Shown here: in pieces, positions 23,872 to 25,668 of the stretch | Layout of the letters: each line of letters opens with the position of its first letter | Position numbering within the stretch: position 1 is the stretch's first letter | DNA from: Syncephalis fuscata S228 | Taxonomy: Eukaryota > Fungi > Zoopagomycota | Reading direction: 5' to 3' | Assembly: GCA_025786725.1 (NCBI GenBank) | Contig: JAHLTZ010000002.1 | Span: forward strand, 806,001-870,000 | Length of the DNA: 64,000 nucleotides | The notes under the pieces: model-generated | Told to the model about the DNA's origin: nothing | Seen by the model: only the letters and a program-made list of their open reading frames with translations | The model's database searches: none | Made by a program: the position numbers and the translations under genes

Positions 23872-24440
23872 TGTTAATAATGATATGCTAGTTGTTAGTT
23901 ATGATTTTACAGCTTGTTTACCCAAACATAAATTGCAATGGTTTAGCTGAGCGTAATTGCACAGCCTTCCGTATACATTTATTTTAGTATATTCTATACC
24001 AAACTTTCTTGATTTTTGGTAAATGCAATAGTTATCAAATAAAGATATGAATATTAAGTAAAAATATCAGTACTTGTATTAATTAAAGCTTGTTAAACAT
24101 TTTATTAACAATTTGATGTAATTTGGTGGTCAAATGACTAACATTTAATAGCACCCAATCTATCGAACATGATGATGGGCGGTGAGTGACATCAATCATC
24201 AAATACTCATCATCATAGATTCATTGTCCATCCATCATTTTATAATTTGCTAATCACATTCTACTTAGTAGTCTGCTAGTTGTGATATATAAAAACGACA
24301 GTTATTGTGTTCTATTAAACGGTTTATTACAGACTGTGATAAAAATACTGATCAGGCGTTAGTACAACTGTATTGGCTTATTGCGCTATTTAAAATATAA
24401 TAGAAAGGTATGTAGCCTATCCTAATACCAAAAAGCAGCC

Positions 24441-24518
24441 TCAGTCGCATATTGCGTCGGCGCCTTCAGCGAAGGTGGCGTATTGATCTTCCTCAGACGC
24501 GAGAGTCGTTAAGGCCAT
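24441..24518 (-). CDS. Candidate 25-aa small ORF (MALTTLASEEDQYATFAEGADAICD*) in a structured, spliced transcript divergent from U2; may be non-coding
   Basis: GC-rich island, many C-ending codons, hairpin ending 2 nt before the ATG, canonical intron 24428-24348 (GTATTA...TACTAAC...CAG) 12 nt after the stop. Confidence 0.5.
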   Translation of the reverse strand: MALTTLASEEDQYATFAEGADAICD

Positions 24519-24816
24519 AGGCTGTCCCGTTGCCAGAACGACAACGGTGCAGCGGCACAAAACAAGCAGTAGAGCGTAGAGGAGTTGTACACTTATACAA
24601 CAAACGAGTAAGTATGTGGTGTAAAAGATTTATTGAAGAAAGAGTGAAGAAAAAACGCAAAAACCAAAAGCTGGCGATTAAAAAGGCAGGGGCTGTCGTA
24701 AATGTTGCACGCGCATATTCAATTGGATGATTGGTCTGGCCTTTTACAGTCCAATCCCACTAGAGATTAGTGTGCCATAAAGGGACGCGCGTAACGGCAG
24801 CCGATAGAGCAGGGTA

Positions 24817-25003
24817 ATCCTCTCTAGCCATTGGCTTAGATCAAGTGTAGTATCTGTTCTTATCAGTTTGATTGCTGATATCTCTCCAACGGAGAGAAGT
24901 AATCAGACCGATTTTTGGGAAGGTCGGCAGTTGCAGTTGCTTGCAACGGACTGTCGGACGGTGCGCCGGTCTTTTCACCTTCGACCGTGTGCGCCGAACC
25001 GCC
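24817..25003 (+). ncRNA. U2: U2 spliceosomal snRNA
   Basis: GGCTTAGATCAAGTGTAGTATCTGTTCTTATCAG core with branch-recognition sequence; stem IIa, stem IIb (TCTCTCC/GGAGAGA), compensated IIc (GTTTGATTGC/GTAATCAGAC), Sm site GATTTTTGG, 3' stem-loops III and IV. Confidence 0.97.
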
Positions 25004-25668
25004 TTTTTATTCTAATAAAAAAAATACAAATACAAGCAAGCTATTGTTATTAAGTAAACATTGTTTATGTGGTATTGCATTGCTTTAGGTTTTATAGTAA
25101 TTAGAATAAATAAAATACAGTTTCAATAGTACGTCATTGCCAAGTTTATAGCAATTAGTACATCAAGTGACGCTGCATATAGAGTTTAAATATTAATTTG
25201 CTTTATTGGATTACAAATAGTACGAGTTAATCTAGCACTTGTTCAGAATAGTGTATAATGGTGCATATCAAATATTTTATTGTATAAATCTACGAACAAT
25301 CAGCTATGCATTAGCACGATTTCTATTTTTGTAATGTTAGTTACATTTTGCACACATTGTTGTTATATTCGTGTTTGTCAAAGCAACAATAAATATTAAA
25401 CTGTATTATATGTTTATATTGTGCCTTTGCAATATCTGTTGATGAAAACTAAATCAGGGTAAACAGGTGAACTTGTTGATTGTTCTATAAATAATTGAAC
25501 AATCACAAAAAACTAAACAGGAAATTATTCTTTGTTTTAATTTAACTAGACATTATACACCTCTGTTCAAAGTTTTCGATATGTATATATTCAATGGTGA
25601 TATTAAAGTATTATTTCTTCATTTCTTCATTTTAGCCTACTTCTGTTTACTTTTGCATTTCTACTAGC

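Follow-up and report, generated by a model that had tools for sequence, protein, structure and literature searches.

Genomic context of the element

The 64-kb stretch of Syncephalis fuscata DNA analyzed here (the window) belongs to contig C112 of the 29.4-Mb assembly, and its sole Rfam match at the gathering score is a U2 snRNA gene located at positions 24817-25003 of the plus strand (RF00004, 131.7 bits). Head-to-head with U2, on the minus strand, a U-rich stretch runs into a GC-rich island, which contains the divergent neighbor of U2 that is the subject of this work (hereafter, the element). The U2 gene, the element and their common upstream region make up a duplicated unit of 662 bp (24381-25041 in the window), which is present in two copies on the contig. 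The copies are located 104 kb apart and are 99% identical (window 24381-25041 versus L002 1501-2162). Their identity extends about 25 nt beyond the element in one direction and 38 nt beyond U2 in the other, and the few differences between them are all located outside the two RNA-coding stretches. At the second copy (copy B), the order of genes is GHMP kinase, NuiA, element and U2. By sequence comparison, copy B, which is syntenic with the loci of related species, is the ancestral copy, and the GHMP kinase and NuiA genes have been lost from the window copy. In S. fuscata these two genes are now found only beside the copy 104 kb away, and the window copy occupies the place where S. plumigaleata has the arrangement GHMP kinase-NuiA-element-U2, but without both protein genes. 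Paralogy of the element with U2 was also considered and was rejected, as the two have only short chance repeats in common.

Two other features were observed around the window copy. A U6 snRNA gene containing ACAGAGAAGATTAGCA is located about 3 kb to the left of the window (C112:803059-803151), where it surfaced as a weak match to the U6atac model. A hairpin ATGATGATG/CATCATCAT at 24173-24268 of the minus strand gives weak, sub-threshold Rfam matches to C/D-box RNAs (snoR43, E 2.8); it is restricted to the flank of the window copy and is absent from copy B.

Orthologous loci were collected through the neighboring protein-coding genes. The syntenic locus of S. plumigaleata (L034) was reached through the orthologue of the chitinase that neighbors the window element; there, a U2 gene (132 bits) faces a sequence 76% identical to window positions 24401-24582. 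Three more loci were reached via the NuiA neighbor: in S. pseudoplumigaleata (L041), in Thamnocephalis sphaerospora (L042), and in an environmental Syncephalis-like contig (L044). The element is located upstream of NuiA in all three, and divergent U2 genes are present at L041 and L042 (136 and 140 bits, respectively); in these two genomes and in S. plumigaleata, the element is thus found between the divergent U2 and NuiA. The environmental contig breaks off where the element has its 5' end and does not reach a U2. Searches for further relatives through the HbrB neighbor yielded S. plumigaleata only, a search with a spurious open reading frame (ORF) over U2 gave nothing useful, and metagenome scans with conserved words returned no matches and then six chance matches, none of them real. 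The conserved divergent pair formed by U2 and the element is a convenient synteny marker.

Two-hairpin structure and its covariation

A covariance model (R1) was built on the structure seen in plain alignments of these sequences. Both S. fuscata copies score 224 bits with this model, the three Syncephalis-type orthologues score 174-211 bits, and the Thamnocephalis sequence scores 54 bits (E about 5e-14); the model matches positions 24404-24592 and has no other match in the window. The alignment used for the covariation analysis (A6) contains five distinct sequences fitted to the model, which favors the structure, and 94.6% of its cells pair across the seven helices. Changes on both sides are found in 11 of the 40 pairs, compared with 3.7±1.5 in 500 shuffles, none of which reaches 11, and controls with slid partners give one or two such pairs (maximum 2). 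The same helices are visible in plain MAFFT alignments, and independent minimum-free-energy folds for four species have the same two-hairpin shape. The fold of the single sequence is only marginally better than those of shuffles (z = -1.97), and the evidence for the structure therefore comes from comparison and not from folding energy.

The lower stem of the 5' hairpin (helix 1) is formed by the strands UCCUC-U-ACGC (24574-24583) and GCGU-CU-GAGGA (24490-24500), both given in the orientation of the minus strand, the second of which directly abuts the H box described below. It contains 9 pairs with 93% of cells paired, and double changes are found in two of them (U-A to C-G in one; A-U to G-C or U-A in the other). 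The upper part of this hairpin (24514-24556; helices 2-4) includes the paired segments GCC/GGC, GCUG/CAGC and CCGUUGUC/GGCAACGG and a terminal loop, GUUCU in three Syncephalis species, whose counterpart in the environmental contig is GUUUU. It encloses the hairpin that had been noted in the first-pass annotation of the locus as a strong structure ending just before an ATG (GCUG-CA-CCGUUGUC-GUUCU-GGCAACGG-GA-CAGC, 24553-24521). The existence of this hairpin is confirmed, and compensatory substitutions maintain it in relatives, where CCGUUGUC/GGCAACGG is replaced by CCACUAUC/GGUGGUGG and GCUG/CAGC by GUCG/CGGC; in total, five pairs of helices 2-4 carry compensatory double changes.

In the 3' hairpin, the lower stem (helix 5) pairs the strand GCCACCU (24473-24479) with AGGAUAGGC (24415-24423). 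All of its 7 pairs are formed throughout the alignment, and in Thamnocephalis it reads GUCUCCU/GGGAAGAC, which amounts to two double compensations. The upper stem (24435-24463; helices 6-7) consists of GCGCC/GGC(U)GC topped by CGCA-AUA-UGCG, and helix 7 contains two pairs with double changes, e.g. C-G to U-A in S. plumigaleata. The two stems are separated by an internal loop, whose 5' strand UCGCUGAAG (24464-24472) is invariant in the five distinct sequences; the 3' strand UUUUUGGUAUU (24424-24434) shows no variation among the four Syncephalis-type sequences, and Thamnocephalis departs from it at the last nucleotide only. A closing helix between CAGCCT and AGGCTG, previously proposed to enclose the ATG, finds no support in the covariation, and two hairpins of the H/ACA type form instead.

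As judged from this conservation among relatives, the element is a real, conserved and structured non-coding RNA gene. The fallback offered in the first-pass annotation, an unknown RNA polymerase II non-coding RNA, was thus right in spirit.

Box H/ACA features, candidate promoter and candidate guide pocket

A hairpin, an H box, a second hairpin and an ACA box form the defining layout of box H/ACA RNAs. In the element, the single-stranded hinge directly after the first hairpin contains AGAUCA (24484-24489, minus strand), which conforms to the H box consensus ANANNA. It reads AGAAUA, AGAGCA, AGAGCA and AAAGCA in the orthologues, so that variation among the five sequences is confined to the N positions, with all three A's fixed. 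The second hairpin is followed after 1 nt by an ACA box (24411-24413), which is invariant in the five distinct sequences, and sequence conservation collapses 3-4 nt after it. Because of the hairpin-hinge-hairpin-tail fold, the ANANNA motif in the hinge and the invariant ACA, we assign the element to the box H/ACA RNAs. The predicted RNA occupies about 187 nt on the minus strand (24408-24594); its mature 3' end is placed 3 nt after the ACA, at about 24408, and its 5' end is set solely by the spacing from a promoter box. With good confidence, the element can be regarded as an unannotated gene for a box H/ACA snoRNA, or for a guide RNA of the H/ACA class, of about 185-190 nt. Such an RNA, which probably assembles with the Cbf5, Nop10, Nhp2 and Gar1 proteins, belongs to an ordinary known class, although without a curated Rfam family. 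A search of Rfam with 201 nt gave no match to any family at E<=10, including the H/ACA families, and a permissive Rfam scan of the surrounding 721 nt (24100-24820) gave nothing relevant. The element adds an unannotated H/ACA RNA family, which no Rfam model recognizes, for the Zoopagales, a poorly annotated early-diverging order of fungi.

The pseudouridylation pocket of H/ACA RNAs is expected 14-16 nt from the box. In the 3' hairpin, as read from the sequence, G24428/29 is located 15-16 nt upstream of the ACA, at the canonical distance for a target uridine. The strands of the internal loop are invariant while the adjoining stems covary, which is the pattern expected of guide sequences, and we propose UCGCUGAAG and UUUUUGGUAUU as the 5' and 3' guides, respectively. 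The likely guide pocket would present UCGCU on its 5' side and GGUAUU on its 3' side, 15-16 nt from the ACA. In silico, however, this pocket closes with G-U-rich pairs, which counts against it and makes it no more than plausible. In the 5' hairpin, once the stems supported by covariation are formed, the conserved loop sequences are more distant from the H box than the 14-16 nt rule allows, and the internal loop at the right distance is not conserved; this hairpin is probably structural only.

The element has much in common with known box H/ACA snoRNAs, the pseudouridylation guides that include the snR RNAs of yeast and the human SNORA RNAs: the same hairpin-hinge-hairpin-tail architecture, an ANANNA motif after the first hairpin and ACA after the second, an invariant internal loop about 15 nt from the ACA, and a size typical of fungal H/ACA RNAs. 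It differs from them in its long 5' hairpin without a conserved pocket at the canonical distance, in the absence of an Rfam match, and in the divergent pairing of its gene with U2 across a fungal order. In snR30/U17, a non-modifying H/ACA RNA involved in 18S processing, the internal loop of the 3' hairpin is likewise the most conserved part; however, the element has no Rfam match, and its loop strands UCGCUGAAG and UUUUUGGUAUU appear unlike the m1 and m2 elements of snR30/U17.

Transcription of the element is probably independent and would start about 35 nt downstream of a conserved CAATAAA box. This box, CAATAAAT (24628-24635, minus strand), is a candidate TATA-like promoter element and is followed by a conserved TTTACACC at 24625-24618; the versions in three Syncephalis species are CAATAAA, TAATAAA and CAATAAA. 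In this genome, the snRNA promoters have a similar proximal box, which ends about 33-34 nt before the starts of U1 and U2, and this spacing would put the start of the element near 24594. The PSE ATCCCACTAG, which in snRNA genes is found about 54-63 nt upstream, is absent upstream of the element. The snRNA genes themselves have a common promoter layout, in which U1 and U2 are preceded by ATCCCACTAG with its end about 53-54 nt away, and U5 likewise has ATCCCACTAG upstream; for U2, this PSE-like sequence is located at 24754-24763 of the plus strand. Variants of the PSE precede U12 (ATCCCATGAC) and U4 (GTCCCATAAT). A box similar to CCATTTAAAT follows the PSE in snRNA genes and ends about 34 nt before the start at U1 and U2, and a sequence similar to TTTTATTCTAA is found 3' of U1, U2 and U5. 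There are two U5 genes (L004 C151:8447 and L005 C168:209574) with near-identical upstream regions of 300 nt; in one of these genes, loop I, which is otherwise invariant, has CCTTTAC in place of CCTTTTAC.

The pocket of the 3' hairpin would select one uridine in the context 5'-RRURYY-U-N-RGYGR-3', probably in rRNA. A scan for targets of the guide type gave nothing above shuffles in the U1, U2, U4, U5, U6, U12 and U6atac snRNAs or in positions 1-1159 of the 18S rRNA, that is, in the 5' two-thirds of 18S as represented on the 1268-bp scaffold C298 (L054). The rDNA is fragmented in the S. fuscata assembly. Another view within the H/ACA class is that of an orphan RNA without an rRNA target, which would either serve as a scaRNA-like guide for some non-ribosomal RNA, spliceosomal or otherwise, or act without modifying a target, as snR30 does, and would have been divergently coupled to U2 since before the split of Syncephalis and Thamnocephalis. 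The scaRNAs, e.g. yeast snR81, which acts on U2, belong to the same RNA class as the element, and the linkage of the element to U2 and their common upstream region suggest co-expression. A UGAG motif is conserved in the upper part of the 3' hairpin, but it is not located in the terminal loop, as a CAB box would be, and the element, unlike scaRNAs, lacks guide-type complementarity to U2 or the other snRNAs tested in this genome. We consider the orphan reading unlikely. If true, it would imply a lineage-specific H/ACA function tied to the expression of U2, and an RNA with a non-ribosomal target would be of possible interest for snRNA modification.

Alternative explanations of the conserved sequence

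The position of the element upstream of NuiA suggests a second alternative, in which the NuiA pre-mRNA includes it: it would then be a conserved structured region acting as the 5' leader or as a regulatory element, or else an H/ACA snoRNA whose host intron is in the NuiA 5' untranslated region. The distance from the element to NuiA, on the same strand, is about 125-340 nt in copy B and all orthologues, the S. plumigaleata gene model begins inside the element, and the window copy has a TACTAAC...CAG arrangement 44 nt after the RNA. At the window copy, however, there is no NuiA downstream. The conservation ends 3-4 nt past the ACA, each Syncephalis-type sequence has an AT-rich box of the CAATAAAG type in the interval that separates the element from the NuiA ATG, several upstream ATGs in the element and the spacer would burden a leader, and no conserved 5' splice site of the GTAAGY type is found upstream of the element. 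The S. plumigaleata model (P0128; L034:14480-14638) has an annotated first exon that begins at an ATG inside the H/ACA RNA. This exon looks like an annotation artefact in the sequence comparison, because the N-terminus of the model is unlike those of all homologues, and the true start is likely an ATG further downstream, encoding MPPFQHF...; the H/ACA RNA explains this probably wrong exon. A place for the element in the NuiA transcript is accordingly improbable, and an independent H/ACA RNA gene is preferred.

Still less probable is an Sm-class RNA similar to the snRNAs, either novel, an undetected U4atac or a small telomerase RNA, in which CUUUUUGG would serve as the Sm site and a 3' hairpin would come after it; spliceosomal cleavage at the adjacent GU might then process the 3' end. 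In favor of this proposal, a U-tract followed by GG is almost invariant across genera and adjoins GUAUUA, the element and U2 have a common upstream region, and U4atac, alone among the minor-spliceosome snRNAs, was found in the genome neither with Rfam nor with a U6atac-derived pattern, whereas U12 and U6atac exist. The site itself, however, has the form C-U5-GG, and every snRNA of this genome has A in place of the C. The sequence after it pairs back to GCCACCU, in the helix GCCACCU/AGGAUAGGC with its two double compensations, and the putative Sm site is therefore a strand of an internal loop and not a site flanked by two hairpins. In addition, the snRNA-type PSE ATCCCACTAG is lacking upstream, no U4, U4atac or other snRNA model matches the element at E<=10, and the ATACTTAC word is not conserved.

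The particular members of this class fare no better. The U1, U4, U5, U12 and U6atac snRNAs were each rejected as the identity of the element, as all of them are found elsewhere in the genome, and neither the U1-like ATACTTAC nor the U5-loop-like CTTTTAC is conserved in S. plumigaleata. Against U4atac, the duplex energy of the element with U6atac is no better than that of shuffles (z = -0.15, versus -2.16 for the U4-U6 control), a K-turn-like motif conflicts with two covarying helices, and a 9-bp match at 24678-24669, which is not conserved, does not exceed what chance would give. The U12 gene is located at C157:67826 and scores 34.6 bits, which is below the cut-off, but it contains GAGUAAGGA; U6atac is present at C315:4451.

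With respect to telomerase RNA, the element resembles the 3' end of the fungal RNAs, in which an Sm site is followed by a 5' splice site (S. pombe TER1): its U-tract directly precedes GU, and the window copy has a perfect TACTAAC and CAG downstream. Unlike these RNAs, the element lacks a template and is far too short, its downstream signals show no conservation, and its U-tract is located inside a covarying hairpin. A sequence beginning with ACACCACATAC resembles a yeast telomerase template, but no template of 1.5 repeats is conserved. Template-like words and GTAAGTATGTGGTG were found nowhere but in the two gene copies, and tandem forms are absent. The array (TTAGGG)3 is absent from the assembly and 20 contig starts carry no telomere repeats, which makes the template test a weak one.

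The interpretation preferred in the first-pass annotation, a spliced mRNA for a 25-residue micropeptide with translation gated by RNA hairpins, is scarcely credible: the strings on which it was built exist, including an ATG-initiated ORF that is found here and, altered, in two relatives, and splice-like signals in the window copy, but substitutions in the relatives are compensatory for the helices and do not keep the codons, and neither the proposed branch point nor the proposed 3' splice site is conserved. The ORF, MALTTLASEEDQYATFAEGADAICD, opens at the ATG at 24518 and ends at 24441 on the minus strand, and a second open frame ending ...GTAYGLNDSRV at 24493 is likewise present as described. 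The ORF contains 25 codons in both S. fuscata copies, 11 in S. plumigaleata, where a 1-nt insertion shifts the frame and brings in a TAA, and 31 with a different C-terminus in both S. pseudoplumigaleata and the environmental contig; Thamnocephalis has no ATG. We judge it fortuitous, and with the ORF not conserved, the Spo24-like resemblance suggested for its start becomes moot. For the proposed intron (24348-24428), GTATTA at 24428, TACTAAC at 24364-24358 and CAG at 24350-24348 can all be read in the window; however, the branch point and the acceptor are unique to the window copy, as neither copy B, at 99% identity, nor any orthologue has them, and the canonical intron is rejected. The supposed donor has no G at position +5, unlike the GTAAGY of three verified introns, and falls in the 3' hairpin, within a covarying helix and an internal loop. 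The Sm-like U-tract and the GTATTA donor are thus accounted for by the 3' strand of the internal loop of this hairpin together with the beginning of its lower stem. The RNA's sequence gives rise incidentally to the ORF of 25 codons, the Sm site and the intron alike, and a false lead, that of a spliced micropeptide gene under RNA-structure control, is removed from the locus. Three S. fuscata introns verified against proteins start with GTAAGT or GTAAGC and have branch points of the CTAAT or TTAAC type.
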